DNA from: Calcarisporiella thermophila CBS 279.70
Lineage: Eukaryota; Fungi; Calcarisporiellomycota
Assembly (NCBI RefSeq): GCF_041956535.1
Contig: NW_027192204.1
Coordinates: 682,186 to 734,496, forward strand
Direction of reading: 5' to 3'
DNA length: 52,311 nt
How positions within the stretch are numbered: the stretch's first letter is position 1; each line of letters opens with the position of its first letter. The position numbers and the translations under genes were made by a program. The notes below the pieces were generated by a model that worked only from the letters and a program-made list of their open reading frames with translations, ran no database searches and was not told the DNA's origin. Below, piece by piece: positions 1-52,311 of the stretch.

Positions 1-22
1 ATGCGGCATACTGTATATTTAA
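1..22 (+). repeat. Left terminal inverted repeat of the window
   Basis: ATGCGGCATACTGTATATTTAA. The reverse complement of 52290-52311 is ATGCGGCATACTGTATCTTTAA: first 16 bp identical, 21/22 overall. Confidence 0.95.
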
Positions 23-418
23 ACAACCTTTTTGGATAATATCCTATGATTATTCTGAATACATTAGTATTTGCATGTGGCAATGTTGTTGCTTTAACGC
101 TAATTAGATTTTAATTGAAAATGCTATTTAACTTTTGCAGATTAGTTTATCAGTTGAGTGAGTGAGAATCCATTTGTATTCTGAATAAAGTATTTTAGGT
201 GTCTTCAAAGAATATATTTTTATATTAATAAATTCTTAATATCCTATGTACAGATTCAACATCTTCATATCTTACAACATGAAGTTCATCGGGTATATCG
301 TTGCAATAAAAATGTAGAAATGACATTCTAATCGATTCCAATGCTATGCGTAAATATAATAATCAAGGTACTCTTTTATTTATGAAATTTCAAACAGCGA
401 ATCCAATATACTCTCATC

Positions 419-1361
419 CTATTTCGACAAATTCGCGTATTTTTTATGCCAATCAACAATAGAGAGATCAGGGTATTTTTCAAAATATTGATCTTCGTGG
501 CCACTTGCTTCTTTTGCCTTTGTGAGAGACCGTGGGTCCGCCCATTTTTGTCCAGAAGAGAGCAATAAATGCACACGATGTGGAGGAACTGGTAGTTCAG
601 TGTCGAAAGCAGAAGCATAAGGATATATCTGTGTTAAAATAATTTTCGGCAGACGAGTTGGTAAATTCCGCTTAAAAATGCTGAGCTCTGAATGGGTATA
701 GGAATGCTTACCGAATCGAACCACTGTGGATCATCCGCCCAAAGGTAAGAAGCGCACTCGGAACAGAAATAGCGTAGATTACCACTGTAATAGGAGGCGG
801 TATTAGGTAGTAGGAACTGTCAATTTCGGCTAACAAGATACCTTTTGCCAAGGTGCTATAATTAGACTTGTGCTCAATTTACTCACCATAGCTCTTGCTT
901 TTCTACAGGATCCTCTCTATTACGAATGGCATGATATACCCTGAAAAAAAATTTAGTCTTGTTAATCATTTTCGAATTTGTTTTGATAGCCGGCTCTGGA
1001 ATCAGAATTTCGAGAAACTTGCTTAAGGTACTGGGCACCTCGCACCAATTTGAATGTTTCTCTCTACAATTTCATGTGAAAAGGAAATTTAAGAACTCTA
1101 CAACAATCAAGATAAATGACGAAAAGTTTTTCATACCTCAGCTCTGATGTTGATGCAACCGCCAGATCCACCCTGAGTTTTACGGCATATGGAGCTTTGA
1201 AATACAATGCGATTTACACAAATGTTATCGACACATCATATTTAATGTATTGGTCATTCGACAGGGCATACTCACCAATAGCAAATCATATATGGATATG
1301 GAGTACTTGATTCGCATGTGAATGCGATTTTTCCACAATGGCAAGATCCTTCGAGCAACAT
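419..1361 (-). CDS. GFA/CENP-V (Mss4-like) Zn-binding protein, glutathione-dependent formaldehyde-activating family; 6 exons
   Basis: Manual splicing gives MLLEGSCHCGKIAFTCESSTPYPYMICYCSICRKTQGGSGGCINIRAE-RETFKLVRGAQYLK-VYHAIRNREDPVEKQELCGNLRYFCSECASYLWADDPQWFDS-IYPYASAFDTELPVPPHRVHLLLSS...YPDLSIVDWHKK. It has the CxC, CxCxxC and FCxxC motifs of the GFA family. One intron (941-1022) has a GC donor. Confidence 0.88.
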
Positions 1362-1510
1362 GATTAATAATTTTACTTGCGAGTACTGGTGTAGCTAACC
1401 AAGAATTGACCCCTACACAAGCGAATACAACACATAATGCAGTATACTAGATTAGGAAGGCATACAAACGCCGCTATTTATTTAGAGTGATATTTTTCCT
1501 TGAAAAGCCC

Positions 1511-1581
1511 TACGGTTTATAATAATATCTTGAGCTCTACATCTGAAAAATCTTAAAGCTTGAGATTATTATAAAGCCGAT
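1511..1581. repeat. Imperfect hairpin / tiny MITE-like element
   Basis: TACGGTTTATAATAATATCTTGAGCT ... AGCTTGAGATTATTATAAAGCCGTA: ~25-bp imperfect inverted arms with a short spacer. Confidence 0.55.
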
Positions 1582-2092
1582 AAGACCCAAAAATCTTCTA
1601 AAATCAATTGGAAAAAGCTCAATCTATGGTGTTGAAAACGATGCTATCCTGTTAAAACCAATACTTAGACTTAAATTTTGTATATAGAGGCCATGTTGTG
1701 AGTTTTCGAATGAAGCAAGAGTAGAACTTTGGCTTTCACAGAGATCAATCATAACTGGCGATCATCGCAAGGATTCATCGATGTGTTTACTCTTTGATTT
1801 TCAATATTTATCAACTCTTCTTTATTGGGCAATGTCTAGGATAACAACTTAAGTGGGAAATATTTCTTTTAGTGTATACACTTAATTTGAAACTCCAATC
1901 TTTTGACTCTTGCGGTGTTCAAGAAGTATAGTTATTTAAAAGAGATTAATTCTCAAATAAGAGGTGTATAACAAATTACTTGTATTGAAAATAATATACA
2001 GTAATATGAAATGAATTTGCACTGTATTCATTAGATTAAAATAAAAGCAATTGGGGGATCATAGAACGAACAAACAATAGATATTGTTCTAT

Positions 2093-4168
2093 CTATAAGG
2101 CAAAGCGAAAATCGGGATCCCTATCTGTAACTTCTTTAGTGCCTTCCATTTCAACGGTATTCGCATTGGATTGGCGTTCCCGACTTCGATTTAGATAATA
2201 TAGATATATTTTAATGGTGAATGCAAGTATAATAGTAAGAAGAGTCGCACAAAAAAGGATAGTGTGTCCGCGAACATAATCAGGTTCATCGTCTTTGCGA
2301 TATATTTGAGTTCCAGTAGCACCTACAAATTGGGGTCATTATCAATCTCAAATTTAATTCTTTAACTACAGAAGTACAGAGTTCATTTTTTACATACCAA
2401 TGCAATTGGCTACACTTGCTATGAATCCAATAGCCACTGCCCTCTTTTCAGCAGGGTAGAAGTTGGCGTTTGCCCACATAAGTCCAATAGGAGGAGCAGA
2501 GCCCATACTATTATTTATAAGGCAACCTTGGTTAATAAGAAATGAAAAAGCAGGAGGGAAATCAACTCTAATAATCTCAGAAAAGGGAATACTTACGCCG
2601 CCACGACAAGGAAAACTGCAAAATATCGCACAGCATTATTTCGTGCCAGCATCAAAATCAAGTATCCACAGGCTCCCAGTAATCCGACCGCTGCCAAGTG
2701 GAACCCTCGTTCGAATCGATGGTCTGAATGGATTGCGATGGAGACACTTACAAAGAAAGCCACGAAATTAGGAGCAAAGGTAAGGGCTTGTGAAGTATAT
2801 TTATCATGGCCCATTTCTACAGTTTAAAAAGGAGAAATCGTAATCCACAAGAATATAATGCAATGAAAGAGGATGCAAATTACGATTGATTATTGTAGGC
2901 AAGAAGTTGGTCAGCGCGTATAGCGCAAAGGTAAATGTGCTCCCAACAAGCGCGAATAGATATACCCGCGGCTCCTTAAACACCTCCAACATATATTTTT
3001 TGTTAGTGCGGGTCATATGAGGATCGAACCTTGCATCTTTTTGAAGCCGAGCAACCGCAACAGCTCGCTCTTTCTCAGTAAGGAACTTGGCGGTTAGGGG
3101 AAAATCGGGGAAATAGAAATATACCAAAAAGCCAGCGATAACCGAGGGAATTCCTTCGATTATGAACAGCCATTGCCAGGGACGGAGTGGATCACCAAGA
3201 CGGGTAATCCCAAAAGCGAGGAGCCCACCTAGAATTAAATAATAATTACGGCGGGATGATGATAGCAATAGCAGGTTCATTTCTTACCCAGAGCATTAGC
3301 CTATTGAAATGAAAAATATATAGCACTAAGTATCTAACCAAAAACCTATCTATTAATTTATGCTCACCAAACTGGCTGCGCCATTAATAATAGCAAGCCG
3401 AGTAGCCAATTCCCGCTTTCTATACCAGCATGAGAGATCTTAAGCGATAGCAATTTACGTGAAGTTCAGGTATATAAATCATAATGCACTTACAGAAGAC
3501 GCACCCCGGGAAGAGGCCTCCTTCGAACATACCTAAGAGACTATAGGGCGTTTTAGTAAGGCTTGGCTTGTCGAATATCGATTTCATGGTTTACGGTACA
3601 ATCTTGTAGCAAAGAGAGACTCGAAATTTTTGACGAAGCCCATGCCAACCGCCGCAGCACCCCAGCTTATCATAATGAAGGCAAACCAACGAGAGGGCCG
3701 CAACTATGTTTAAGCCATAGAGTAAACATAACAAAACCACGCGCAATATTGATTGGCTTTTACCCTCTTAAGGCCGATATTCGACGGAATTTCCGACAAT
3801 GCATAGGGGAAAAAATAGATGGCCACGCACCACAGAAACTGGCCTTCCGAAAGATTCAAGTCCTTCTCCAAGCCCGCCAACCTCGCCTAATAATACAACC
3901 ACATTAGAGCCAGTGTGTCAGGCAAACTCTTGGGGGCGAGTACATTTGCGATATTGGCTCGATCGAGGAAGCACAGGATCAGAAGAAGCACCAGGAACTG
4001 CAGCGTTGAGTTAGCATTTCCCTTGGTTCAAGAGAGCGAAAGCCAAACGGAGACCAATACCGGCAATAGAAACCCATCGGTTTTTCTGACGACTCTTCTC
4101 TCTACGCCGTCGAGCTCGTCGACCGCCTCCTTTTGCAGAGAAACCTCAAGGACCGCAGCATCATTCAT
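2093..4168 (-). CDS. MFS transporter, anion:cation symporter family (Dal5/Tna1-like permease), multi-exon
   Basis: Exons encode MNDAAVLEV..ERRVVRKTD, LCFLDRANIAN-ARLAGLEKDL, EIPSNIGLKR, PWQWLFIIEGIPS, PDFPLTAKFLTEKER, SDHRFERGFH and the C-terminus DRDPDFRFAL*, all typical of fungal ACS-family permeases. Confidence 0.9.
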
Positions 4169-5265
4169 TCTATGTAGTGTAAACTCGAGAGTAGTCGAGG
4201 GTTGCGGCGGGCCTAGCGATACTTGCTCTTTATATTGTTCGGCGCATCCTTAATCTTTCTGGGACAGCGCTGTAGGTGTGGGAATGGGGCCGCCAGGGTT
4301 ACACTTCCTCGAACCTACGGCGATGATTCAATGTCAGCTGATACGGATTCAGGGAGGGGTGTTATTGGAATCCAATGATTTCTCGTTTGCCTTGCTTGAA
4401 CAAAGTTTCTTTTTGCGAAGGGCACAAAAACTTTTCACAAGGCGAGGCTGGTACTCCTCAATCCCAACGTCTGCTCTCTGAGCGCTCTTATTGGCTGAGA
4501 TGTTTTCGTAGATTGTGGCTGTGGCTGGATGGACCAGTGATTTCCTCCGGCGGGATGGTTGCTTGCAAGTAGGATGTATTTTCAAATTTAGTTTAAAGTT
4601 TAAAGCTTTCTTTGTAGGGGCGGCTGCAGAAAGAGATAATTACTGCGATCCTGGAGATACCTAAGGAGATAACCTAACCTGACGGAGGTTTATGTGGATT
4701 TTATAATAACCTAACCTAATCCAGATATCAACCGAACTAAACCCGCTAATGCTTAATAGGTTTGGACTAAGACATGCTAGAAGCAAAGTGGTTAGTTTTT
4801 AGTTTTAAATTTGTGTTATTATAAGGGAGCGTTAACTAATAGCCTCTGCAGCTAAGTTCCTACCTGATCTCGGCTCTAATCGAATAAACTTTCTCCTAGA
4901 CAAAATATAATCTACAAAACTCAAACTCATTACTGGGAACTGTATGCATCGGTCTCGTCCAAGATAACGGGCCAAAAATTTCAATGATTGCTATATTGTA
5001 GTAGTTATACTTCATCGTTTTCTATAATAATAAGTTTAAATGCTATCTGCTCTTCGAAAAACGTTATGGAAATTTCGATCTTTCAATCTAACTAGTATTA
5101 AAGATAAAATAGAGTAATTACAGGTTTTCCGAGAAAAAAGCAAATAGAGAAGCAATATAATGAAATACAAAGGTACGATAAAAGAAACCCATTAATACAA
5201 CAACCGCCCTGCAAGTTTCGGGACATTATGGAAACCTCGATTATTTAGGAAAAATATTTATCTCA

Positions 5266-8023: not shown

Positions 8024-9238
8024 TTAAAGTCTGATTTTGGCTGCAATATTGATTGGGCGATTAGAGGTGATATTTTGATTAAACTCGAGGACAAATTTCG
8101 CCTCCTTTGCCTCTTGTTCACGTACTCTAGTTACATTGCCTCCTTTCTTAAGGATTATAGACTCGGGTAGTGGCTTGGGTTTTGTGAGAAGTTTTGGCTT
8201 TGAACTGGACTTGAGCCTGGTGGAGCTGGCTGAAACCATAGATTGGGCACCATCATACCTGTAACAAAACCCATCACTAGTTGTATCCATAGTTGACCAA
8301 ACCTGAGTATTGAAGGGTGTAAGAGTATCATATATTGAAGCAGTGCTTCCGTCGGAATTCGTTCCACTGTATCGATATACAAAGCTCGGGTCCCGGCTTT
8401 GCCAATCTGCCCAGAGTTTGTCAACAAAGGCATGATGCATATAAAATATGGGGCTATAGTAAACATGAAATTAGCAAATGATAAAAAAGTTCACTGTAAA
8501 TGGACTCTTACTCGTTTGGACTTGCCAGATCTAACATATCCCCACCAACTCCGACATGAATACTATCATGTGGCACTTCGATCGCCGAACGAAAGTCATC
8601 ATAGTCATCTCTAGTAGATATAATGTTCTGGAGTCTGTAGGGATCCCTAACCTCGTCTTTGGAGAGGTTTATTTGTCTCTCAAGACAATGTGGGGATGCT
8701 GAGCCATCTCCAACATAGGTTACTTGCCAATTTGCGAATTGTCCGTTGGTTACACAGCTACCGCTTCCCCCTAACCAACTATTAGAAAATATTGGACTAT
8801 TATTGGCATCTTCGTAGTCTAAGCTCCAATCCTATATGGAGCAATGTTAATATTGCGATAGGATACGATGGATGTGAAGATACATACCCAGTATGGGACA
8901 ACAACATTGGGGTTAGTTGACTGAAGCGCTTTCTCAAATTCACGTACAAATGCACGATGCCAAGGGAGAAATTGCGGGTTTTGATGGGCGTAATACCTAG
9001 CTTGGGTATGCCATTTTGAGAGATTGTCATATCTATTGGGTCTAGTTCCTTGATTTAAGGCTTTGACGGCGTTGATAAAATCCAATCTCTCGGAATCCGA
9101 GAGCTGACGGAATTCTTTTCGGACTGAGATGTTACTACATTGTCCGTTAACAAGTGTGATTAGAGTTAAGAGAATTATAGCTAGGAAAAGCTTGATGAAG
9201 CAGATTAAAAGATAACGTTCAGTGTCAATTGGGGACAT
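8024..9238 (-). CDS. Secreted tyrosinase (type-3 di-copper protein), 3 exons
   Basis: Signal peptide; VRKEFRQLSDSER; CuA region WHTQARYYAHQNPQFLPWHRAF; VPYW-DWS; CuB region [35 protein letters not shown]; C-terminal CYRYD. Confidence 0.93.
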
Positions 9239-16099: not shown

Positions 16100-19000
16100 G
16101 GTATATCATTTTGCTTCACCTCATCCTGACCAGTCTTGTTGCAGCTCAGGTATTCGCAGCTATTAACAATACAGTATTTCTGTCCCAATTTGGAGGCAGA
16201 ATTGAAAATATTGTCGAAGTGGTCGCCGACGGCAAAGCAACTCCTATCAGCTCAAATGAATTCCTTTCTAAGCTTGGAAAAACTAGCGGCTGGCGCGTTA
16301 ACAATGTTGCTAATACTCGCCATTAGTCAACGAAAGTATAATCTACCCCAAAAGCTGAAGAAGAGGAAGTATTGACGGCTTGTGTTCCGCTGATCAGCCG
16401 AAACCCCTATGCCAATCCTTATTCGCCAGCAATGGTGAGTACCCCCTATACCTCGACGCGCCGAGGATATGGACCACCTATACCGCTGGATCAGTACAGT
16501 CTTGCATGTGCCAAAGACTCGCCTTCTCCTTGCAGCATTGCCTACACCGTGCAGGCGAGCACAAGTAATGGGTTAAGCTACGCAATTACTACTAGCGATT
16601 CACGTACTTGGAGTAACACATGGATATAGTACGACTCGTTCAGAAGGAGATGCCTTTACCCAGAAAGTAGCCGATTCCATTGAAAATTCACTCTCTGATA
16701 GCTACAGCCACACCGATAGCCAATCGGTCACCGACAATGTCTCGCGCACACTCACAAATGGTTATCAGAAGAGCCACGCCACAATCAATACCAGGGGGTC
16801 TGAAACGTTCTATAGCAAAGATTCCCACTGGGATCAATCCGCTAATGTTTATTTCCGCAGTGGTGATTACAAAGAAGATTCAAGTTGGTGGAATATCGAT
16901 GCTAAGATCTCCGGATGTCTGGGTGCTTCAGAATTAATGAAAGCTATTACCAACTGGAAAGCATGTGCTGAAGTTTCTAGCGGATACGGAGAGAGTAAAT
17001 TTGAATCCCACAGCAGGGAGAACGGGGTTGAAGTTTCTGCGTCAAGTGGAGGCTCTTCGCTCTACAATTTCCGTGGCTCTGAGAGTAGCACTAAATCCGA
17101 TTCGTTCACTGATACGCACACTGAAGCAGTCGAAAACTCACACAGCATCAATAGAGGCACATCCGACACGACAACAAAGACTAAGACCGTGACACATGGT
17201 CATACTGAAAGCTTTGCAACGACACACAATGTTCAATTTTCCAAATCTGAGAGCCACGAAGACCAGAAGAGAGGTGCCTGGCAGCGGGCCGTGAATAATG
17301 GCACCACTTTCAGCCAGGCCCAAGGCTACACAGTGCAGTATCAATTTCAAGTGGCACCAGGCAAATGTAAGATGCTGGTAGCACTTCCTTATGCCACTAT
17401 TATTACTGTGCCATTCTTATGCGTTAGTTCGGAGCAATTGTACGAAATACGCTACACTGACATTATCAACCTGGACATCGATCTCGAAAAAAAATTCAAA
17501 AGTGCCATCGGGGTCGTTAACTGCGGTGCCGAGCGCGATGATATTGATCTACCACCCTTCGGCAACGATATGAGCGAACTAGACACAGCTGATTCTACTA
17601 ACAGCATCCGATTCGGTGATATCTTTAACAGTTCCAGCAAACTTACATCTAAGAGTGGCGAATTTTCATTTTATTTTGAGATAACTGGTAAGCTTGTTCT
17701 ATATCAAGGCAGCAATACGATATGGCAAAATAGTATCGACTACTTAACCAACTACCCTGTGCGTGCACGCATAAACGAGAAAGGCCACTTTTTAATTGAA
17801 GCGCAAAATATCTTCAGCAAAGTTAGTCCGCCCTATCATCAACCCGATGACTAGACTACCGTTTGGTCTACTACTGCAGTCAATCACAATTATACGATTG
17901 GAGTGCCTCGACGTGCTAGCCTGCAGCAGATAGTTACACGTTGCTGCTCAAAAACCGAGGCCAGCTAGCATTATATGATGCGGCCAGTATAAAGACGTGG
18001 TGTGCAGTGAACGCTGCTCGTGAGAGTTGAAACTATCGCTTCTGTTTTAAGCATCCCGAGATATACCGTGCACCAACTGACATGGTGACTAGTGGTCCTG
18101 AGCGAGGTCAGAAAGATTCACATAACGAGATAAGCAACGAAATCGAATTACTAAAAAAGGATTCCATGATTTCTTTGAACTCTGATTGCAACAGTAATTT
18201 AGCGCAAAACACCGGCTTAGTCTCGCCAAATGGACGATTCAAAGTAATTCTACAGAATACCGGTAATCTAGTCATAAAGGATAGCATGCGGACCATGTAT
18301 TCCAGTTATTCTGCAAATATCAATGGTACTAAAGGTCCATTCCAGATGGTCCTGACCAACATTGGCGAGCTTGCTATTCGAGACGTTACAAAACGATTAC
18401 TATGGAAGACAGTAAATGGTTTGGACCGCGAAAATCCACCCTATACCGCGAAAATCCTGGATGAAGGTCGGTTGGCCATATTTAACCGTCATGGTAATGA
18501 AGTGTGGGAATCCTGGCCGCAACGCAATAATAGCTACTCCTTAAATGTGAATAGTCCCTTCTTTTCTTCCTATTGCCAATGTGATAAGTGCATTTCACCC
18601 ATCTGTCTCTGCACGGATCCCAAACAATCAAATCACAACGGCACATACTGTGGCGCTCAATTAAGCACTCTCTCTATTAATCTCAACTGCAAGCCCGATT
18701 CGCTATACCAGTGCGATGGAGTATATGGCTCTATAGTAAAGGAAATTGATGCCTGTACCCATGGATGCAGGAATGCTACCTATGGGCAGAGTGTATGCAA
18801 ACCCAAGCCTTGTTTGCCCGATGGGACATTGGTCCAAGAGAAAAACACCTCAAAGCGCCGAGCTGCACCCATATTCTATATTCAAGGATGTAAACGCCGC
18901 GAAATCACTTACGCGACCCTGCAATGTTTGGGTAAAAGTAACTCGGACATCCAGTTAATTGTCCCTGCAGACCTCGCTGCCATAGTACTAGGGCCACCGA

Positions 19001-32339: not shown

Positions 32340-33690
32340 GTAAAGAGTTCCTGCCAAAATGAGCTGGTGAACATGCTGTCTCGGTCGGACACAATGACAC
32401 GCGGTAATCCATGTAGACGGAACACAATGTCGAAGAAGAGACGTGCGACTTCCGGCGCTGTGACGGTGGACTTTGTCGGAACAAAATGAGCGCGTTTGGT
32501 GAGCCTATCGACAAACACAACAATAGAGTCATATCCGGATCTAGTTTTGGGTAGACCAACGATAAAACCCATCGACACTTGTTCCCATCTATCGCGAGGT
32601 ATGGGGGGTGGCTGAAGAAGACCGGGTGTTTGTTGATTGGTCAACTCGTTCCTTTGGCAAGAAGCGCAGTTAGCTATCGCTTCACATCGCGAGATAGGCG
32701 TGGCCAGTAGAAGTTTCTGCCAAGTTTGAGGTATGTCTTGTCGTAACCGGGGCGTCCTGAGATGGGTGTATCGTGGGACTCTTGTAAAAACCTTAGTCGT
32801 AAGTCGTTGTAATTGTGTACACAGAGGCGCTATGAGTCGTCAGTGGGGTCGTGGAAGTAAAGAAGGTCGTCTCGTAACTGAAATCGGCTGGTTTTTGATT
32901 TATCGTGAATGTTGAGCGAATCTGGGGTAACTTCAGGAGTCGGGCGAGCTCGTTAAAGTGTGAGTCTTGGTTGTAACCTTGTATTAGGTCGTTCAAAAGT
33001 TCTGGGGCTATATTAGTGGTCGATATGTAGTTAACAAGTGGAAGTGGGTTACGAGAAAGGGGGTCGACATTGCTATGTTTTTTTTCCTTGTTTGTGAACA
33101 ATGTGCATGTGTTCACGATGTGGTTGAATTTCCAGTGTCCAATGAATGAGTCGAGAGTCGGAACCTTTGAAGTCAAAGAGCCATTGTAGTGCGCTGTGGT
33201 CGGTTGTTAGTTGGAATTTTATCCATCGATGTAAGGATGTAACTTGCGGAGAGCTCAAATGACGGCAAGGCATTCCATTTCAGTGGCACTGTAATTTCGT
33301 TCGGTTGGGCTAAGTTGTCTGGAGAGGTAACAGATAACGCGTTCTTTTCCGTCATCCTGTACATGTCCAAGAACGGCACCGAGACCGGTTTTGTTGGCGT
33401 CTGTGTAGACAATGAAGGGCTAGGAAAAGATTGGCTGGGCAAGGATTGGCGCGGTGGTCAGTCGCTCTTTTAGGGTATAGGATGCAGTTTGTTGTTCATC
33501 GCCCCAAGTGAAACTACATTCTTGACGAGTAGTTGGGTTAGAGGGCTGGCTATGGTTGCGAAGCCTTTTACAAATCGTCTGTAGTAAGATGCTATGCCGA
33601 GAAATTGTTGAATTTCCTTGTGAGATTTGCTCAGCCACAAAACCGGTATTCCGGAGTGGGTCTGGTCTTTTGTTTGTGGTTCGTGGAGAA
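32340..33690 (-). mobile_element. Ty3/Gypsy pol remnant (RT C-terminus, RNase H, integrase), frameshifted
   Basis: [27 protein letters not shown]; LTTAPILAQP; TDHSALQWL; PGLLQPPPIPRDRWEQVSMGFIVGLP; VDRLTKRAHF; HGLPRVIVSDRD. Confidence 0.93.
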
Positions 33691-33729
33691 AGAGATCGTT
33701 CAACCACTTTTCTTCTGCTAATCCTCAAA

Positions 33730-34411
33730 CTGCCGGATGAGTAGATGCATCTGGCGAATCTTGCATATTGGCGGCGGTTCAGGAGGGAATCCGGGATGGT
33801 ATAGTGGCCATCTATGTGATTCGCTCGGGCTTCTTCCGTCTTGGCCTCAAAGTTTGCCTCGCTCAGGTTCATGTTGTTGGAGAGTAGGCCACAATAGAGT
33901 ACGTGGGCTCTATTGAAGTGCTGCCGACATTCAGGGCAGCGTTTCCCGATGCCGAAGGTGTTGAGACGCCATCTTACTGCCAATGACACCACGTTGGGAT
34001 CCGCGAAGAAGATGAGCTTGTCTATTCCGCATTGTGCTCTACATGACGGGAGCATATAGGAGCACTGGCCTTCCGTTTATAAGGGTCAAAGAGCTTTACA
34101 AACACCTGTTTAATATGCGGATTAAAATGTCCAAGGTGTTCAACGTTGCATACCTTGGACCAGGCTTTGACTTTGGCCTTGATAGCCTCGTCCGCCTTTG
34201 GGTCCAAGCTTTTGGTAGGATCATACTCGTGATCTACCGTCAAGCCAAGAGTGAAGAGGGTCCTCTCCAAGTTATTCTGGTAGTCTGCCGTTACCAGGAT
34301 TTCTACGGTATGCTAGCCAAGGTATGCGTCGTTAAATACCTTGGACATTTTAATCCGCATATTGAACAGGTGTTTGTAAAGTTCTTTGACCCTTATAACG
34401 AAAGGCCAGTG
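33730..34411 (-). mobile_element. Non-LTR retrotransposon 3' fragment with CCHC-type knuckle and an inverted duplication
   Basis: LAVRWRLNTFGIGKRCPECRQHFNRAHVLYC (C-x2-C-x7-H-x3-C). Segments 34063-34158 and 34317-34411 are inverted copies. Confidence 0.6.
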
Positions 34412-34463
34412 ACGTACACCCTCCTCAGCTCATGTTGCAGATCAGCTTTCATGGTCAACCTTA

Positions 34464-35466
34464 CAGCCGACCGCAATAACATAGTCACAGATGGATATAT
34501 TTTGTTAAAATCTAAATATTTCAGTAGCTACTTTCAAGGGAACACTGAAAATATGTTGAGAAAAATCTCCCACACTATTTTCAGAGGTATATGCCACCCT
34601 GGCTTAATGAAAGAAAACCGGTTAACCGGGCTACTGAATTTGAAAAAATGCATATCTATATTTTGCCGTTTTTTTGGATTATAGTACCATTTTGATGTTT
34701 GAATGCTCTTTATTCACATATTTGATATTATTCTCTCGCTTCTCGTTTATTAAAACTGTAACTGGAGTCGATGTGTCATTGTTCAGTGGAAAATTAAGGA
34801 GGAAAAACTACGGTTATTGTTATTAAAATTAAGCCTCTTTCAAACAAGATTCGCTCTAGCATAATTCAGCTCGCAAAGGAGGGAAAATCTTCTTATCAAA
34901 TCGCCGATGCGTTGGACATTCATTTCACTACAGCAGCCAAGATTGTAAGAGAAGAAGTAAAGCGACGCTCCGATCTTAATAGACGACCCGCTGGCCGCCC
35001 TCGTATTTTGAGTAAGAGAGAAGAGAAAGATAGTGACATTGATGACGTCGGGTCAGTGCAAAAACTCAACCGATGTGAGAAAATTTTTTAAAGAGGAATA
35101 CAACAGAGAATTGACCGCTGATACCGTGAGAAGGGTAATCCAAAGAGAAGAAGTGCTGACTCGAGTGCTCCCAAAGAAACCTCTTCTCTCAGCTGCGCAC
35201 CGTAGACGTCGCCTGGAGTTCGCGAGAAAGCATATAAATTGGACTGTGGAAGATTGGAAACGAGTAATGTTTTCCGATGAGACTAAATTAACGTTTACGA
35301 ATGTAACAGGAAAGCAATACTACTACAAGCGCAAGGGAGAACCGCTTCGTAGTAGACATATCCAACCCACAATGAAACAGACAGGAAATGGAGTGATGGC
35401 GTGGGGTTGCGTTACAGATCATGGCGCGGGAAATCTGCGCCGTATCGATGGGGCGCTCAACGCTGC
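34464..35466 (+). mobile_element. Tc1/mariner element, 5' part (left end plus truncated transposase)
   Basis: Candidate left end TA|CAGCCGACCGCAAT. From ~34828: IKPLSNKIRSSIIQLAKEGKSSYQIADALDIHFTTAAKIV..AGRPRILS, then a frameshift, then KKPLLSAAHRRRRLEFARKHINWTVEDWKRVMFSDETK..VMAWGC..RIDGALNA. Truncated at TGTAAC. Confidence 0.9.
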
Positions 35467-35738
35467 TGTAACAGGATTAACTCAGCTCATTATGCTACCG
35501 AGATAAAGTTAATATCCTTTACTATTTTTGATAGTTAGTCGTCTTATTGTGTTTATGAGATACATCTTAAGTTTAGTCATGTGAAAACCATATTGAGTTA
35601 TTTGTGATTTCTTATTTATATACGAGCCCATTCATTTATGAATCCTCACCGATCTTCTATTTCATAAAGGTGAGGATATCCCTTTTATTTATGATATTAT
35701 TATTATTATGGTGTTATATTGTAGATATTTTTGTTACG
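35467..35738. mobile_element. LTR-like insertion truncating the Tc1 transposase
   Basis: Begins TGTAACA exactly where transposase similarity stops. AT-rich body; right end (TGTTAC) uncertain. Confidence 0.4.
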
Positions 35739-38184
35739 CTCACATATCATCAAAGGTCAACCCGTTTACAGACCACGCGTCGGGGTGCTTTATGTCCACT
35801 CACAGAGTGATATCCCCGCACACATGGCTGACAAATTGGGTCATGCAGACAATAATCTCCAGCCATAAAGCTTCTGCTCCGGCAAAGTCCCTTCCATAGA
35901 AGTTGTAAGGAAATGAACTTAGCCAAGTCCAATGTCCTTAGAACCTTAGCATTGACCTTGATCCATCAAAGACCAAGCAACACCCATACGCCAAGAACAA
36001 TACAAGCATTTACCCATGAAAACCCACATTAGCTTAGTTATACTTTTATCCTTTTTACATTATTTAAGACACACGATCATTCGTCAGAATTAGATTTAGG
36101 AATGTCAATGTCACTCTTCCCTTAGTTTTCTTTAGTCAATTTCCCCTTGTCTTTAGAATAAACCTTGTCTTTATTTTTCTTTGCAAAACCAAGTGTCCTT
36201 CCTTATAGAAATGCAAACTTATCCTGGTCAATGGTCACCATTAAATCTCCAGACTCATATTCCATGCCGAGTTCTGTGTCAAATAAGTTGGCCTAGTGCC
36301 TTCAGTTGACTTTAGTTCAATTATAGCTGTTAGGGACGCGCATTGATGTTTTCCGTCTTGAACCTCAATGTGGCTGGTGGCGGATGTGCAGTTTTCAGAT
36401 GCAATCTCCACTCGAAATGACCTCTTCTTAAATTGTACGGCATTGCTGGCAGCGTGTACTGGCAACAGGTACCTCTACCCTAACTTGTGCATCGTTGGAC
36501 TTCTCATCCTCTTCGCTTTGCCAAGGCTGCAGTTCTTCAATGTAATCTCGGATCCACTTCTGCAGTTATTTCTCTAATGGGTCGAATATAACTTCATAAT
36601 CAATCGTCCGAGTGGATGTATTCGTGGGTGGGTTGTGTTTCCCAGGAGCTGGATTACTTTGTCGACCCGAAGCCATTTTTTAAGTGTTGACCAAGTGTGC
36701 ATTAACGTGTACATAATACTGCGCCTCTAGTTCCTTTTCGATATTCGAGAAGCCTTACCAGTTTACCCTATAAAGCAAAAGGACTTTCGTAAAAGAGATG
36801 GTTGGTGGTATATACTTGTCATCAAAATAAAGAGCTTTTTGTCACGTCCTGACAATGCCTTCTGGTTCCTCGAGCTCAGTTCTTTAAATTAATTTCCGTA
36901 CCATCATTAGTTTTAGCAACAAACAACCTAACAATCTCCTAGTGTTCCTGGTACAGTTCCATGTATTCAGCCTCTCACCGTTCTGAAAGGACCTTGAATT
37001 CAGCTTCTAGAATTTCATTATGACTATACTTATCAAAATTATTTCTATAAAATTATCGTATTTTGCATACTCTAGGTCTATTTGGCTATTTAAGAATTTC
37101 TCAACTATCACAATAGGCACAAGATTAGTCTTTTCCTGTTTTCCTTTCGGAATCCCTTGTCGCCCATTAGCCATATTGTTGATATGTATTATACAATATA
37201 CAGATCGGGTGAACATTAGGGAGAAAAATGGGAAGTATCAACAAAAAAGTGGAGGCAGCAGACTGTTAGGTTTCCACACCACGCGGGAACTATGGGATGC
37301 CCACAAGCAATAGTGGAACAAATTTATCCATATTTATGAATATTAACATTGCTGCCAGTCAAAGACTACGCTGGAAATTAAAATTTCTAATTTTCAATAA
37401 TTCATGAGACTGGAGATTCTTCCCAGTTCCGCAACTGGAGAGGCGTAACATTCAGGGACAAACCAACAGGAGAATCGCACGAACAAAAATCAGGTTAATT
37501 CTCATTTTGTTTATCTGTATTGAATGAAATTTTAATAGATATTGTAATTTAGGTTACTACTGCAAATATGAAAACAGGAACTTATATAAATTGTATATAT
37601 TTGATATATGTCATTGTTTAAAAAGCTAGCATTTAATTGTTAAATAATAGTTTAGACTAGGTGGTTTTAATTACTGTAACACTATCGTAGTTAATGCTAA
37701 GAAGCAGCCGCATACCCTTTTAAATATAGCAATGTAAGGAAAGGAAATAAGAAATATTGCATATTAAATGGTACAAAGTGGACTCCCCTAGTGTGCTGCG
37801 ATCATCACTACGAATATAAGCATGTGACTTTAGCTTGGTATTCTGAAAACCGGTAGGTTTTTGCCTGAAGCACTGATTGCTACTCATCTCATTAAATATA
37901 AGTGGCGATAATACTGTGATCTTGAAGACGTAATAAATGAATATGATAGCATTATCATTATAGAATTCAACTTAAATATTCTCTTTATTTTCGATTCCTT
38001 TTTTACAAAATATTATATGATCATACTCTGAAAGCCATGATAACATGTTAAAACAAGAGATAATCGGAAAATAAACTTATACATATTTATTAGCAAATAA
38101 AGGAAACTTACATCCTAACACTTATATATACTTTAGATAACATGAACCACCAGATTCTTACTAAGTTCATTTCAAATACTCCTG

Positions 38185-38445
38185 TTAACAGCCGCGGTCA
38201 TCACAACAATGGATCTCGTAATTGGCATTCCAGCGTGTGCAAGAAGGACCAGCATTGTAGCACCGGCCACATGTCCAACCTTTGTCTCGGCATATGCGGT
38301 TTGCGTAGTTATCACATACAGGGCGGCTATCCGTTCGTAAACACTGTTCAAGGAGGCAAGGGGGGTCTGCCAGTACCCCCATTGCAAACACAATAACCAT
38401 CACATAGCTAATTAGAAATAGGATATTAAAACGAATTGAATGCAT
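38185..38445 (-). CDS. Small secreted cysteine-rich protein (86 aa, 10 Cys)
   Basis: MHSIRFNILFLISYVMVIVFAMGVLA signal, then DPPCLLEQC...CGRC...HCCDDRGC*. Confidence 0.78.
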   Translation of the reverse strand: MHSIRFNILFLISYVMVIVFAMGVLADPPCLLEQCLRTDSRPVCDNYANRICRDKGWTCGRCYNAGPSCTRWNANYEIHCCDDRGC

Positions 38446-40086
38446 TGCCAAAGTAATAGTTCAGGGCTAAACAATCAAATTGTAATCGTGAGGACATAAA
38501 ACGCGGATTCTCCAAGTCTCTTTAAATACGTGTTTTTTAGGTTTTAATATCATAATGAAACTAAGGATAGCAGACTATTATACAATACCTTTTACAAGTT
38601 ATTTTATGCTATCTGAAAGTTAATTTTAGAAATGATCCGCCTTTGTAAGGGAGTCAAAGTGGCTGATATTTTGTTATTTTTCTATTTATAAGTGGACCGC
38701 TTCATTAACCTCTTCTGAATAACCATTCATATCAGTGGCGTGATTATTTTGGGCTTTGAGAGTTAAATTTGGATTTTGAAAAGTTTGAAGAGATGCAAGA
38801 TGCTCCTCAATTCGTATAATTTGTTTGAATTATTTTATAGATCTTTTCAATACCGATCATGCAGTAAAAGCTATATGCATTCCAAAAAAATATCACTCAT
38901 TCCAAGTCTAATTATAATGTGATGGCTCATAAAGAGCAATAAAAGGTTTGATTGTTAAAAAAACTCACTCTAAGCTACACTTAAGTTTACCTTTTTTACA
39001 AAGAGCAATTAACTGAGAGAATTGTAGTAATTTTTTGATAGTGACTCTGACTGGAGGAAAAAGAAAATAAATAACAGCATATTGAATGACAATTCGTTAT
39101 CGTAAGAATAAAGAGTTATAGTGTATATTCATTCGAGCGTTTACAGTGGGAATAAGTCTTATAATATAAAATATAAAATATATAAGCATTAAAATTGAAT
39201 AAAATATTAGGATTTAAAATAAAAAAGCTTATAGAGCATTAATAAACTTAAGCTACTGAATATATTCCTTATTAAAAAAATTTTTTTTCTCACTCTTTGT
39301 AGTATTTTGGAGAAACTACTGTATATTTAGAAATATACTATCAAGATGACTAAGACAAACTCATCTTGAATTCAATAAAAAAGTTAAACTACACCATTTT
39401 TACTTTGTTCTTACCTTCATATTCTTAGTCTAAACATTGAGTGATTCTTAAAACTAACTCTAATAAATGATCATGTGTTTTAAACAATGTAAAAAGGTTA
39501 AAGCCTAGATAATCCAAGTTGATTTTTCTGGGTAAATGCTTGCATTATTTTTGGTAGGTAAGAGTTGTTTGGTAGTCAATAGGTCAAGGTCGTTGCTAAG
39601 CAAAAGTTCTAAAGAAAATGACCTTGGTTAAATTTATTTCTTTACACACCAGGCTTTAAAAACTAAACCGACAATGTACTGCGACTCCTCCTTATTCTCT
39701 ATCCTAAGATAATATTCGCATCAATTTGAATTTGAAATATTAAAATTGCTAGTTACAATTCACCCACAGTTATATTAAAACAATGCATTAACCTATTTCA
39801 AATTACAATCATTAAATACATTTTCCTTAATAAACACGTGACAAACTACCACCATTATTTACACTGTAATATTGAAATGGTTTAAATATTGATGCGGGAG
39901 ATACTGTAAAATAGATTCGAGATATAAGCCAATAGAATATCTGTGCGGGGGTACAGTGCTATTCCTTGTGTATTCTTGCCACTCATTGTTGCTTAAAATT
40001 CATTACTAGCTATCTTAGTAATGTTCCAAATAGATTTATGATGGTTTAGAAAATTAGCAGACTCTTATAATACTTCGAGTAATTTT

Positions 40087-44879: not shown

Positions 44880-45740
44880 ATACGTCATCATGAATTTCTC
44901 ATAGTAGATAGTTTATATTGCGGAATCTTAGGACGAAGGAATGTTAAAATGTTTCGAAGCCAATCTTCAATGCTAGCGGATATTTGAAAGTTGAAATGCT
45001 TTAATATCAAGGAGCCCTATTATATGCTGTTGTTTTTCAATCTGTATAAAGTAAGTGGAAGTTAAATAATAATAGTGTAGGCAAAATTGAAGTGTCAGTG
45101 GTCGAGACTCTATCGACAGCTTCATCAGAGGCGATCTCCAGGAAAATGGAACTACTTGTAAGATGTTGCTTCGAGAGTTATGATCCACTTGGTAATCGCT
45201 GTCTGGGGGAATGCTTTCTAATTAAGGGCTTTAAAAAACCATCTATAATCGTTCTTTCCCCCAGAGCTTACTGTAGATTCATTTCGTCAATTCTGGCATC
45301 GACAGTACTTTAACAAAAAAGGTGGGAGTAGTAAGACACTAGAGCAACGTTTTGAAATATATTTTGACAATCCAAGCTTATTTCAGGAAGGAGTCTAAAG
45401 TTGGAAGTTAGATTATCATGTGTAGTATTTTAGTGCAATCTCGCATATGGCTCTAACACAGCAATCCAATTCATCGGAAAGTCAAAGAATCATTTTCAGC
45501 ACATTAAGGTGGCTCCAGCCTCTATTATCTCTAAGTTTTGGACCTTATGCACTTTAGTAGAGGAAGTCAAGTTTGTTCTGTTGTGAATGGCAGAGCATGC
45601 AACCGATTATACGCCAGCTATTGAATCCGGAGCCTGTGAGAGAGAAGTATTTTTAATATACTCTTCAACCGGTTCATAGTCTGTCTACAAATGTTGTTAA
45701 CGTAACCAATTCCATAGAGTACTGGAGGTCCTAGCATATT
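44880..45740 (-). repeat. Degenerate coding relic, copy 2 (paralogue of 27040-27910)
   Basis: The minus-strand frame, with stops, reads IDEMNLQ*..LEIASDEAVDRVSTTDTSILPTLLLFNFHL, colinear with copy 1. Confidence 0.75.
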
Positions 45741-47694: not shown

Positions 47695-47964
47695 AGATGC
47701 CCTGAGACATACAGTAGGCCGCATGGGTGTTTGAGCAATTCGTGTGTTTTGCTTAACACGCGTATATTTCCTACATTTATCGTAGCTATGGTTTGAAACT
47801 ATATTAATATAAATAGCAGATCTAGCCTTTTCAACCATGTGCAGGCACTTCCAAATTAGTAGTTATAACATGGTCAAATCCCCTTTCACCACAATTATTT
47901 CGGCATCTCCTCATAAAAGAGGGATGGGAAAGTTAGTATAAAAAATTAGAGTCTACGACCTTTT

Positions 47965-48093
47965 TTGGATACAGTATGTCGAATCAACGAGGGGCTTGAT
48001 GCTCAACATTACTGTAAGATTCTCAGCGAAGAATATACATGGACATTGGAACATCATAAGCTCAATAAGTCGAAAGTGATATTCCAACACGAA
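47965..48093 (+). mobile_element. Tc1-type transposase DDE-domain fragment
   Basis: CRINEGLDAQHYCKILSEE..L...VIFQHE resembles the Tc1 segment preceding the second catalytic Asp. Confidence 0.7.
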
Positions 48094-49158
48094 TGTTGTC
48101 CAGCTAAAACTTGTGTTTATTTTAGTCATGTATTTAATAAATCCAATTATAGCAGGGATAGATAGAAAAACTATTCGAAAAATTTCGCTGTTTCAACCAT
48201 ACCATCTCTCTTGACTGACAACTACTGACTTCTGGTTAAAAGCTTAAGGGATGAAATACTGTCCGCAACCATCACAAAAACCATCATTCTGTTTCTCATC
48301 ATCCGAATTGGCGGAATATCCGCACTTATTACAAGTCCAGCTCTGCATAATCGAAATAGTTAAATTTACAATCGTTTGCCTACAAACAAATGTAAAGATT
48401 TCAATATTATTAAGGATACAAAAAATTTTGACCTAGATAGTCGTCAGTATGGACTAGTAGAGTAGTGCAAAAGACCGGTTAATACAAATACAAAGAAAAA
48501 AATGAGGAGATGCTATCTTAAATAATCTTCAAACTGGTGCATATTTTATCCGGCTGACTAACTTAGAAAGGCGGTATTTAGTTCACACATGACTACAAAA
48601 TATTTTTCTGAAACTAATATTTTAACCGATCCATATCATGGTTAAAATTCTCTATTGACATTTAAATATCCAAAATTATGCTAATATTTTTTTTGTATTA
48701 TTATCATATCTAGTATCACAGGTAGACTTAATTCTTTAATAAAGATTCTGTATATAATCTATTTATTAGTTCTAAAGGATAGGACTAAATAAATTGATGA
48801 AAATAATACAATCAAAAAAGTGAAGTGATGTAATTTTAGAGTTTACGGCGTAGAAACTTAATTGTAAGCCATGATATATAGTTTGCACCCGTCCCTAAAA
48901 GAAGATTTCATGTAGGATTTTAATTAGGTACAGTAGTCGTAGCTGTTTCTACAGACGTGATCGAAATATTGGGAGTGTTCACGCTCGATTTTTTGAATAA
49001 GCGCTTATTGCGATTATAAAACACTCCCAGCCAATCATGCACCGCTAATTTTTCTCGCTACGCTAGGGTTATTCACGCTCGATTTTTGGCGTTTTTGCGT
49101 TTTGCTTTTTGATCGCATTAATTTTACAAAAAGAATTGACATGTTTTAATCAATTGTC

Positions 49159-50337
49159 ATGCCATCACTCTCGGAAAGGGAGATTTTGGAAATTCTTATC
49201 GTGTAACATTTGATTCAACTTGAGGAAGCGGATGTGGATGACTATACTAGTTGGGATTTCGGTCTTTTCTTACTTTTCATTTACACCTCTCGATATTTAT
49301 CCCCAAGATCCTTGGTTCCCAAATCCCCCCATTTTCGCGATGATGTTCTTTTTCGCTTAGATGATGGGCGATTTCGTAGACAAGCTCGCATGTGCAAGCA
49401 AGCATTCGCTGCTCTGGTAATGATGTTAGAAAGAAATCCTTCCCTTCATTCAACTGGCCCTACGCAACAATTGCCGGTATGGGTACAACTGTTAATTTTT
49501 CTCCGCCGGCTTTCCAATGGCAATGATGTTTTCGATTTAGCCTCAAAATATTCGATCGCAGAAGGTACTGTCATCAAAGTCACAAAACGAATTACCCTCG
49601 CGATTGAATCACTACGCCCCGAATATGTTACCTGGCCAAATACTAGAAGAAAGGAGGAGATTAAAAACAAGTTCCTTGATATGAGTGGCTTTCCAGATGT
49701 AGTAGGAATTATAGATGGGACACATTTTCGTCTTAATTTCGCACCTAGCAAGGATCCCGAAACGTATTGGTCTCGAAAGAAAGAGTATGCAGTTCAGGCT
49801 CAATTAATTGTTGATTCGGATTTTCGCTTTATCGACTATGAAATTGGTTGGCCTGGGTCGGTCCATGACGCTAAAGTTTATGTGAATTCTCAATTTTTTC
49901 GGCAACGTGAGGTGTTACTGCATCCACCCGAATACATTATCGGTGACTCGGCTTATCCCATTTCACCTTTTTGCATCACGCCTTTTCGATCTCCACAAAA
50001 TCGCCAAGAGAGAATATTCAATACGATATTTTCAAGTAAAATTAGAAATATTATTGAAAGAGCTATTGGTCGGCTCAAGAACCACTTCCCCGCATTCTAT
50101 TCATTGTGCTTGAAGGGCATGGAGAGTAATTGTAGGCTGATACATTGTGGAATTATGTTGCACAATTTTGTTGAATCCTTTGGAGATGAGTGGGAGGTTG
50201 ATGAGGGGAATATATTGGAAGAAATGGATGATGAATTGACCTATAATATGGATTGTGACAGAAGTGCTCGTGCTTTGGGAAAAGAAAAGCGAAGCAACTT
50301 GTTGACAGAGGTGCTATTAAGAAACGGCTACGATTAA
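49159..50337 (+). CDS. Harbinger/HARBI1-type DDE transposase (DDE_Tnp_4); one premature TAA near the N-terminus
   Basis: GIIDGTH, GWPGSVHDA, IIGDSAYP, IERAIGRLK, CGIMLHNF. The upstream in-frame ATG at 49159 reads MPSLSEREILEILIV*HLIQ. Confidence 0.92.
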
Positions 50338-50722
50338 CCATTCAATGTATATATGACACAATACAAGGGTATTTATTTTGTTAAGCTTGGGTTCAATGTA
50401 CTAAATATTCGGGGTTGTAATTTATCATTTGATCATACTGTAATCACTTTCATAAATAATTCTTAATCAAATATAATTCGGTGCACTTTCCATAAAAATG
50501 TAGTAGGTGCTAACTGGTAATTCGGTTCCTTAGAAAGACTAGGATGCTTTATTGAATTGGACTTATGATTACCATACACGTACTAACACAATTACATTAC
50601 CAGTGAATTGTTCGGAAATTATTAGGAAATTAATATAGGTGAAGACAAGAGTTAAATGAATTAATGAGTTGAAGTTAATGGCTAAAAGTTAGATAGTACG
50701 AAAATGAACAAGCCGTTGTACT

Positions 50723-51698
50723 TTACTCATCCTCCTGCGCTCTATTTCTATTTAGCTTCTTCATTTCAATATCTAACCTCCTATTATTAAACTTAATTTC
50801 TTCAGTGATCCGAATTCTCTCCAACTCCATATTATTTCGTTCCAATTCTAGCTTTTGGTTAAGCAATCGTAACTTCTCTATCTCCGCCTCATAACTCAAG
50901 TGTGCCTGGCTTTCCTCTTTACGGCGCTTCGACTCCCTTTCGTCTGCCATTATTTTTACATATTCATTAAGTACTTCCATCGTATTCTTTGAACGTTTTC
51001 CACTAGATTTAGCAATTTGAGATTTTGTTCGATTGCTAACAGACGTTGGTGGGGTTGCCCACTCTACATCAGATACGTCCTCCGCGTCCTCAAAATGGCT
51101 CTCCTGGCTTGGGCCGACTTCATTATCCACCGTACTTATGTTGTTTTCTTCTCTATCAATATCGGAGAATATTTCAATGAGGCGCGTCGGATATACGTCC
51201 AATACAATTTTGTATTGTATCTAAAAAAATTAGTTTTCACCTTTCAACAGATTCACTGATAATTCTGCCTAGATTTTGACCATCTACACTGATAGCTGAG
51301 GTACTATACTCAGGCCCAGGAATCTTGTAGGAAGGCGACACATTCTCCCTTGATCCATGGTATCTTTCAAAATGATCACGGCGTTCAAACACTTGAACAT
51401 CTGATCCAGTCATGCCTTCTTTTTTCTCGACGGCTACCCAGAGTTTAAGGAGCGAGTCGTATTTGTTCTTGCACTGTTGTGTAGTAAAGCCGAGCTTATT
51501 TGACGTACGCTTCCATATCTCCATTTTAATCCCCTTAATATACGTATCCCAATGTTCTTCTACAATTGCGATCAATGTATCAATCTCCTTAGCTGTCCAT
51601 TTGGCTCGTCGATTGCCAGTCGCCGTATGTGAATGGAGAGATGAAGATGAAATTGAAACGCCCGTAGAGCTCAATGTAGAACCACTTCGTGTTTTCAT
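50723..51698 (-). CDS. Myb/SANT-like DNA-binding accessory protein of the Harbinger element (splice junction near 51221-51300 unresolved)
   Basis: KWTAKEIDTLI..IWKRTSNKL..TTQQCKNKYDSL trihelix motif, acidic linker and C-terminal coiled coil. Confidence 0.8.
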
Positions 51699-52289
51699 TT
51701 ACTAAAAAAAAGTAAAACGATTTTCTAATAAATCTTTTATAACCAGGCTGTATTAATGGAGCATTTTTTTTTTCCTTTCGTAATATAGTAGTTCATCTAT
51801 ATAGTTCTTTGAACCTTGTTATTTGAACCCTGGAGATTGTCTGGGCAACCCCTGTAATGTACTAAATCTTCATCATGCATAATTTAATGGAACTTCCCAC
51901 TGTGATAAAGATAAGATATTTTAACTTGTGAATCAAGTTATGATAAATTCGTTTCAGCCAAAAACGCGACTCGAGAGGTGATTATTTTTAAGCGATATTA
52001 CGATTTTCTGAGTATTCTGCTGAATCCAAATTAGCCAGTTAAAATGCAGGATTTCGCTTAATTTTAAGCGAATAATCAGAAAAATCGGTAGCGTGAACCA
52101 CCCCAATATCGGATTGATTTCAGCCAAATTTACTTACAGGGACTTTTTACAGGGTACTGGGAGAAGGGAAAATTTTGCATGTGGTTTCCAAAAAGAAGCA
52201 GCAAGAAAAGGAGTAATCATTGCATCAAAAATGAGGGCATTTGGATGTATATTGGTAGAACTATTAGATCTCAAAAGAAGAACATAATA

Positions 52290-52311
52290 TTAAAGATACA
52301 GTATGCCGCAT
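52290..52311 (-). repeat. Right terminal inverted repeat of the window
   Basis: TTAAAGATACAGTATGCCGCAT, the inverse of positions 1-22. Confidence 0.95.

Follow-up and report, generated by a model that had tools for sequence, protein, structure and literature searches.

The 52,311-bp stretch of DNA analysed here (called the window below; C14:682186-734496, part of a 781-kb scaffold of Calcarisporiella thermophila CBS 279.70) carries an inverted repeat at its two extremities. This window-wide repeat is an ordinary artefact of cutting the sequence at assembly gaps. The window very probably represents one assembly contig within scaffold C14, which ended on each side 13 bases into a Tc1-type copy lying outward of it.

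Both ends of the window are outward-facing Tc1-like tips

Window bases 1-16 (ATGCGGCATACTGTAT) are the exact reverse complement of bases 52296-52311 (16/16). Lengthened to 22 bases, the repeat matches at 21 of them, the sole mismatch being at base 17 (A versus C), which confirms the coordinates and counts of an earlier note that was based on the letters of this DNA. Within the window, the exact 13-mer CAGTATGCCGCAT was found at the two ends only, and shuffled controls yielded a mean of 0.83 13-mer matches even when two mismatches were tolerated. The genome-wide count of the tip proposed in that note gave six exact copies and none for the reversed control. Chance is ruled out as the source of the repeat.

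The repeat corresponds to the 13 terminal bases of a Tc1-like terminal inverted repeat (TIR) together with its TA target, TA being immediately followed by CAGTATGCCGCAT. On the left, the tip occupies positions 1-13, with CAGTATGCCGCAT on the minus strand, and the TA of this insertion lies inside the window at 14-15; the body of the element would extend to the left, into the gap at C14:679905-682185. On the right, the TA is at 52297-52298, again inside the window, and the tip of a second Tc1-like element follows at 52299-52311 on the plus strand, its body extending to the right, into the gap at C14:734497-739097. Thus, at both ends the body side points outward and the TA lies inside. This arrangement indicates that each tip is the inner end of a separate element concealed in the adjoining gap, and that the two tips do not terminate one element of 52 kb.

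The same polarity bears on the proposal, made in the earlier note, that the window is a giant cargo-carrying TIR transposon with bases 1 and 52311 as its real termini. A perfect 16-base inverted repeat at the window ends is what such an element would display, but the repeats have the wrong polarity, with the body side outward and the TA inside, which refutes the proposal; moreover, the window ends are N-run edges, and a second copy of the supposed element is absent from the genome. Window-end-family transposase in intact form is also lacking inside the window, because both internal Tc1 copies are truncated (see below). A giant TIR transposon has practically no chance of being the correct description.

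The edges of the window coincide exactly with runs of N, of 2,281 b on the left and 4,601 b on the right, and the last 270 kb of C14 contain eight such runs of irregular length (355-4,649 b). The genome of CBS 279.70 was assembled from 454 reads with SOAPdenovo (PMC11393059 Suppl. Data 1). It is the N runs, taken as scaffold gaps, and not biology that fix the window ends; the inverted repeat stands at bases 1 and 52311 because the assembler stopped there. Beyond the gaps, the far edge is unique DNA on the left and a different high-copy repeat on the right.

The flanks past the TA also resemble each other, 6 of 7 bases agreeing between the two window ends (empirical P 0.0025-0.0054). This agreement counts against the reading with two separate Tc1 copies, and the other copies in the genome are without such a target motif. 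An extended target preference (TA-T-N-TTTAA) was considered as the cause of the 21/22 match and rejected, since the motif is absent from every other copy. Alternatively, both window ends might flank one and the same Tc1 insertion, in a circular molecule or a collapsed tandem unit, at a near-palindromic target (TTAAAGA-TA-TATTTAA). The agreement of the flanks would fit this, and Tc1-type elements prefer palindromic AT-rich targets. However, scaffold C14 has further contigs to the left and to the right of this one, the target of the copy on C10, the sole one with both flanks readable, is non-palindromic (4/10), and a 54-kb circle or tandem unit has a low prior. We regard the single-insertion explanation as extremely unlikely.

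Many matches of a young Tc1-like family lie at contig ends

The family to which the window-end tips belong gave 28 matches in the genome, many of them at contig ends. TA stands directly outside the tip in all six exact 13-mer copies, window ends included. In four of the six, the sequence reaches no further than base 13, where a gap or the start of a contig intervenes, and the remaining two lie at most 1.8 kb from a contig start; the repeated halt at exactly base 13 was counted against the contig-gap reading. The ends with diverged tips on C10, C8 and C49 likewise have TA directly outside, and that on C74 is without it. In all readable copies, the element body is 3′ of CAGTATGCCGCAT and the TA is 5′.

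The copy on C10 has both of its TIRs readable, each of about 40 bp and each with its TA, spaced about 1.75 kb apart. The TIRs of the family are thus about 40 bp long and start, after the TA, with CAGTATGC(C/T)GCA(T/C)GAA, and the whole element measures about 1.75 kb. Contig C70 has a copy with the same 13-mer tip and the body 3′ of it. Its ORF matches the catalytic domain of the Sleeping Beauty transposase SB100X (5CR4) with an E value of 1.8e-38 and contains an HTH_Tnp_Tc3_2 domain; it has the motifs WSDESKF and FQQDNDPKH, and it ends short of the expected site of the third acidic residue. Pfam DDE_3 gave no match in this ORF at E<=0.01, and the element is assigned to Tc1 from its HTH domain and the match in the PDB. 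The reading frame of the C70 copy is broken. Another copy, on C2, emerges from a gap at the very point of the element with which contig C70 begins. A 274-b element on C37, searched genome-wide as a candidate for the subfamily that fills the gaps, has a Tc1 tip in its first ~100 b only, the remainder being an unrelated high-copy small repeat, and the search was uninformative on this point.

The family shares with Tc1/mariner elements of the Tc1 / Sleeping Beauty type the TA target, the terminal CAGT... tip, TIRs of about 40 bp, a length of about 1.75 kb and a transposase with a Tc3-type HTH. The comparison differs for the copies at the window ends, which are known from 13 bases plus the TA and whose bodies would lie in the gaps.

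The window contains single-copy genes followed by transposable elements

Positions 16-33400 are single-copy, gene-bearing DNA that has paralog-level matches only (68-81%) elsewhere in the genome. Accessory-type genes of the sort described in the earlier note are indeed present; they include sequences for an MFS protein (2804-3280, minus strand), a tyrosinase exon (8819-9238, minus), a B_lectin-like protein (18082-19095, plus), an NmrA/NAD_binding_10 protein (20990-21799, minus), a PALP enzyme (22413-23336, minus), an SDR (25172-25597, minus) and a Pyr_redox_2 protein (29427-30359, minus). Next to them, at 32258-34055 on the minus strand, is a likely LTR-retrotransposon remnant with weak integrase-core and RT-RNaseH fragments, both under the Pfam cut-offs.

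The internal Tc1 end that the earlier note had placed at 34464 is real; TA followed by CAGCCGACCGCA at 34462 begins a truncated Tc1 of a different family (34462-35466, plus strand) with an HTH_Tnp_Tc3_2 domain. Its protein is 54% identical to the C70 transposase, and its DNA is 91-92% identical to copies on C26 and C8. An old, internally deleted Tc1 at 47710-48114 (plus strand) has a tip of the type seen at the window ends (TA followed by CAGTAGGCCGCATGGGTGTTTGAG, like the C37 copy) and retains a transposase remnant at 47965-48114. These internal Tc1 relics are detectable at the protein level only, and the C70 element gave no blastn match to the window. Between the two relics lies a non-autonomous TIR element of about 3.65 kb (35945-39600; arms at 35945-36103 and 39444-39600), parts of which are multi-copy at 91-96% identity.

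The rightmost feature is a Harbinger-type element at 48966-52112 (plus strand), consisting of a DDE_Tnp_4 transposase (49210-50337, plus) and a Myb/SANT gene (Myb_DNA-bind_4; 51237-51698, minus). It ends at about 52112, 199 b short of the right end of the window, in line with the distance of ~200 bp noted previously. Window positions 49508-52112 are 97% identical to C3:41741-44345, and further Harbinger copies are found on C6 and C17. This element is unrelated to the repeat at the window ends.

Of the 41 ORFs in the window that reach 95 aa or more, 32 were scanned with Pfam, among them all 16 that reach 150 aa, and these scans gave no DUF3435 captain. A search of the genome with PF11917 gave no match, and the control genomes were equally without one.

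The window resembles its surroundings in composition and TE load

From C14:642 kb onwards, up to where the scaffold stops, GC content is 36-40%, so that the window matches its own flanks. It lies in a low-GC, gap-rich and TE-rich zone of about 140 kb (about C14:642-781 kb) that reaches beyond it on both sides. TE families of the window have further copies at C14:750-751 kb and 769-770 kb. Three Tc1 remnants were found in or beside the window, at 35.0-35.5 kb and 47.97-48.11 kb of the window and at C14:743.8-744.3 kb, and none was found in C14:512-680 kb. The genes of the first 33 kb are unique and have diverged native paralogs. Neither the unique 33 kb nor any other unique segment of the window occurs a second time in the genome, so that the search for the same gene block at another locus, as envisaged in the earlier note, came out negative within this genome. 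The one protein of the window that is represented in the genome collection occurs there on a single contig.

These results bear on a composite, or 'sandwich', transposon, in which the 52 kb and the Tc1 copy on either side would move, or would have moved, as a unit, with the transposase acting on the outer ends. If true, this would give an early-diverging fungus a means to mobilise a set of genes for tyrosinase, lectin, detoxification and defence peptides. The block has the same tip on both sides, at two of the only four gap or contig edges with this tip in the readable genome, and it holds accessory-type genes; moreover, engineered sandwich Sleeping Beauty vectors and BAC-sized cargoes can be mobilised. 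Against this stand the lack of any recurrence of its unique parts in the genome, the diverged native paralogs of its genes, and a base composition and TE load that are equal in the flanks past both gaps, so that the block is not discrete; the TA duplication is uninformative. As the right gap borders at its far side on another repeat and the left gap on unique DNA, the outer ends of a composite element cannot be defined. The efficiency of Tc1/mariner transposition also drops steeply with length, and a natural 50-kb composite is not known. We consider a composite transposon very unlikely. A variant in which the facing inner ends serve as a substrate for alternative transposition is, taken jointly with a natural sandwich Tc1/mariner, also highly improbable.

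The block shows no sign of being a mobile unit. The earlier note had offered, as its second reading, that the repeats are the ends of two Tc1/mariner copies outside the window, the window then being either composite-transposon cargo or a contig that breaks off in two repeat copies. The outside copies and the broken contig are supported, the breaks being scaffold gaps and both contig ends running into Tc1 repeats as that note had allowed; the composite cargo found no support.

Discussion

We return to the reading of the window as a contig bounded by two outward-lying Tc1-type copies. Read directly from the assembly were the tips with their TA and polarity and the gaps next to them, as well as the transposon family with its transposase and the presence of the block in one copy. 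The following course of events would account for them. On each side, the assembler probably halted at a young Tc1-like copy of about 1.75 kb, near-identical to other copies in the genome, because a short-read assembly could not have resolved these copies from one another. Judging from the 13 bases and the TA at each edge, full Tc1 bodies are expected to occupy both gaps. The two insertions would be independent events. As the ends of a Tc1 element are inverted, the tips that face each other across the window, the right one of the left copy and the left one of the right copy, must form an inverted repeat. The intervening 52 kb would then be ordinary chromosome, belonging to a low-GC, TE-rich scaffold end in which several Tc1 insertions have accumulated.

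The exact tip is found at only four gap or contig edges of the readable genome, and two of these face each other across the window. We attribute the two facing tips to local clustering of Tc1 copies; they remain a coincidence.

The observation has a practical side. Windows that are cut at the gaps of short-read assemblies will often have both ends a few bases inside one repeat family, and ends inside the same TIR family automatically provide the whole window with a perfect 'terminal inverted repeat'. The direction of the tips and the position of the TA offer a test, which takes minutes, to distinguish this artefact from a real giant element. The biological gain for Calcarisporiella thermophila consists of a young Tc1-like family and, at a scaffold end, a low-GC compartment rich in Tc1, both of them ordinary.

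Two copies of a TIR element around unrelated genes are likewise seen in the bacterial composite transposons Tn5 and Tn10 and in sandwich Sleeping Beauty vectors. Unlike in those systems, the block studied here shows no evidence of movement: it is present once in the genome, its composition is that of the flanks, and its outer ends are undefined; its 52 kb also far exceed natural Tc1/mariner cargo. The Starship elements of Pezizomycotina similarly span tens of kilobases and carry accessory-type genes in a TE-rich region of a fungal genome. The present host belongs to a different phylum, Calcarisporiellomycota, and not to Pezizomycotina. In contrast to Starships, the boundaries of the window are outward-facing Tc1 tips.

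Inverted repeat and its transposon family

The first 16 bases of the window (ATGCGGCATACTGTAT) are identical to the reverse complement of bases 52296–52311, and the inverted repeat extends to 21/22, with the sole mismatch at base 17. Direct comparison thereby confirmed the perfect terminal repeat described in the earlier note. Within the window, the exact 13-mer CAGTATGCCGCAT, corresponding to the outermost 13 bases of a Tc1-like TIR (hereafter referred to as the tip), occurs at both ends and nowhere else; shuffled sequence gave a mean of 0.83 matches with two mismatches allowed. The genome-wide count that had been proposed for this 13-mer yielded six exact copies, versus none for the reversed control. 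The window-end repeat is genuine and not a product of chance.

All six genomic copies are directly preceded by TA, the Tc1 target dinucleotide. Three of them (the left window end, the right window end and one on contig C50) enter N right after base 13, one constitutes the first 13 bases of C6, and the two on C37 and C70 can be read beyond the tip. The ORF lying 3′ of the tip on C70 (C70:784–1272) has the motifs WSDESKF and FQQDNDPKH, and matches Pfam HTH_Tnp_Tc3_2 as well as the catalytic domain of SB100X, a Sleeping Beauty transposase (5CR4, E=1.8e-38); the catalytic triad is incomplete in this readable copy. With the C70 element as the query, 28 matches were obtained in the genome, many of them located at the beginning or end of a contig. 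When aligned, their termini read TA followed by CAGTATGC(C/T)GCA(T/C)GAA(G/T)GTAT(A/G)TGAAATT...GTGTTTT, with a TIR of ~40 bp, and a copy on C10 has both ends visible, each with TA, ~1.75 kb apart. The repeat family at the window ends is of the ordinary Tc1 type. Assembly breaks fall repeatedly at fixed element positions: four of them are at tip base 13, and a copy on C2 starts after a gap at the element position where contig C70 also starts. Such recurrence is the pattern expected from near-identical copies collapsing in short-read assembly.

C70 also encodes a GST-like protein of 277 aa (VTP21DRAFT_10810; positions 2253–3086, − strand, of L010, the stretch read from C70), identical at 249/277 residues (90%) to one from Actinomortierella wolfii, which belongs to a different fungal phylum. 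It is encoded within a 1.33-kb segment shared by C70 and C49 at 98% identity (second copy at L038:344–1675, L038 being read from C49). Within ~0.3–0.45 kb of each copy of the segment there is an independent Tc1 insertion, the two being from different subfamilies. This gene could represent TE-associated horizontal transfer or contamination.

Orientation of the tips and assembly gaps

All readable copies have TA on the 5′ side of CAGTATGCCGCAT and the element body on its 3′ side. On the + strand, the left window end reads ATGCGGCATACTG followed by TA, with the body side to the left, in a gap, and the right window end reads TA followed by CAGTATGCCGCAT, with the body side to the right, also in a gap; the TA targets are inside the window, at 14–15 and 52297–52298. 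Because the body sides face outward and the TAs lie inside, these tips cannot be the termini of an element that fills the window. The earlier note had offered two readings, and this polarity refutes one of them, a 52-kb giant TIR element with cargo, and supports the other, the ends of two Tc1/mariner copies outside the window. The two tips would thus each mark the inner end of a copy that extends away from the window; the copies are recognized here by the 13-base tip and TA, and their bodies are predicted to lie in the gaps. Inverted ends are a property of all Tc1 elements, so that the right tip of any copy and the left tip of a second one necessarily form inverted repeats.

The window (C14:682186–734496) is located inside C14, a scaffold of 781,212 b in a genome of 28.2 Mb and 116 scaffolds. 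An exact sequence match for a protein encoded on C70 assigns this genome to Calcarisporiella thermophila (locus tags VTP21DRAFT). The flanking sequence, which the earlier note had suggested retrieving, consists of N runs directly outside bases 1 and 52311 (2,281 b on the left and 4,601 b on the right). The final 270 kb of C14 contains eight N runs of irregular size (355–4,649 b), six of them within the last 100 kb. The published CBS 279.70 assembly (Calth1, JAZGQU000000000) is described as the product of 454 sequencing and SOAPdenovo (PMC11393059, Supplementary Data 1). Given the irregular sizes and this mode of assembly, the N runs around the window are most plausibly scaffold gaps whose sizes were estimated. 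The window is a single assembly contig, and assembly stopped at bases 1 and 52311. That the repeat sits at the very ends of the window is an artefact: the window was cut at two assembly gaps, and each gap coincides with a predicted copy of an ordinary Tc1-like transposon.

Beyond the tip and TA, the next seven bases agree at six positions between the two ends (TATATTTAA against TATCTTTAA; window 14–22 and 52290–52298, TA included), with an empirical P of 0.0025 for TA sites sampled from the window and 0.0054 for AT-rich sites only. A target motif like that of the window ends is absent from every other family copy, and the flanks of the C10 copy agree at only 4/10 bases. One reading of the 6/7 agreement is that a near-palindromic site received a single insertion, in a contig that is circular or represents a collapsed tandem unit; with the contig scaffolded on both sides, we consider such an arrangement very improbable.

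The block between the tips

The whole window was searched against the genome in three pieces, and no second copy of the block was found. Window positions 1–33 kb gave paralog-level matches only (68–81%), and high-identity matches were limited to discrete TEs at 33.6–39.7, 44.6–46.3 and 48.97–52.11 kb. Tip orientation and copy number, the defining tests of a giant TIR transposon, both led us to reject the window as such an element. Along C14, the GC content per 10 kb is 0.45–0.55 up to ~640 kb, and drops to 0.36–0.43 between 642 kb and the end of the scaffold; that of the window (0.36–0.40) matches its surroundings over 40 kb on the left side and 47 kb on the right. The left flank has ordinary genes (phospholipase D and S28 peptidase). 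Beyond the left gap the sequence resumes with unique DNA, and beyond the right gap (L003:4602–4940, read from C14; C14:739098–739436) with a different, high-copy repeat of ~250 b. In copy number, composition, TE load and flanks, we found no sign of the block as a mobile unit. The reading of two outside Tc1 copies is supported in its plain form, a contig broken at two repeat copies; a composite transposon is very improbable, the block not being discrete from its surroundings.

Copies of this ~250-b repeat reach 99% identity on C5, and there are many others at 70–96%. A second repeat, of ~90 b, comes next and is present at 89–98% on at least nine contigs; both are probably MITE families.

A Tc1-rich compartment at the scaffold end

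The terminal ~140 kb of C14 (C14:642000–781212) form a distinct compartment (GC 36–43% versus 45–55% further in) with clustered copies of Tc1, Harbinger and small TEs, and resemble a subtelomere-like or accessory region.

Tc1 transposase remnants are present at window 35033–35503 and 47965–48114 and at C14:743763–744347, with none in C14:512–680 kb, and copies of the window's small TE families lie at C14:750–751 kb and 769–770 kb. The second remnant belongs to an old, internally deleted Tc1 copy (window 47710–48114), situated ~850 b to the left of the Harbinger element, in which TA is followed by CAGTAGGCCGCATGGGTGTTTGAG, a tip of the type seen at both window ends and on C37. Taken together, the remnants, the TE load and the flanks show that the region around the window is a Tc1 sink near the scaffold end. 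The older, diverged copies would have been assembled through, and two young copies would not, leaving contig borders. The window-end tip is present at four gap or contig edges, and two of these face each other across the window; this notable coincidence is softened because the region is a Tc1 sink.

The window contains further repeats. A ~3.65-kb element at 35945–39600 has inverted arms (83 nt at 72% and 59 nt at 83% complementarity) and no recognizable transposase; parts of it are multi-copy at 91–96% identity, and its ~310-b units recur at C14:750392 and C14:770005 and on C13, C25, C30, C3 and C6. Direct duplicates of ~750 b (27094–27837 and 44936–45669; 72–90% identity) lie 17.8 kb apart and have ~10 paralogous copies elsewhere at 73–85% (C31, C19, C16, C33, C15 and C56), and thus belong to a multi-copy gene or element family.

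Relation to known systems

For Starships, a search for the captain domain DUF3435 gave no match in the genome, with the control of the search also silent, and the host here is outside the Pezizomycotina. As regards a composite transposon, the one testable feature is discreteness from the surroundings, which the window block lacks. The flanking elements share with the Tc1/mariner elements the TA target, the tip and TIR, and a transposase-bearing sibling, all of which were tested and found; with their bodies in the gaps, they are predicted members of this group.
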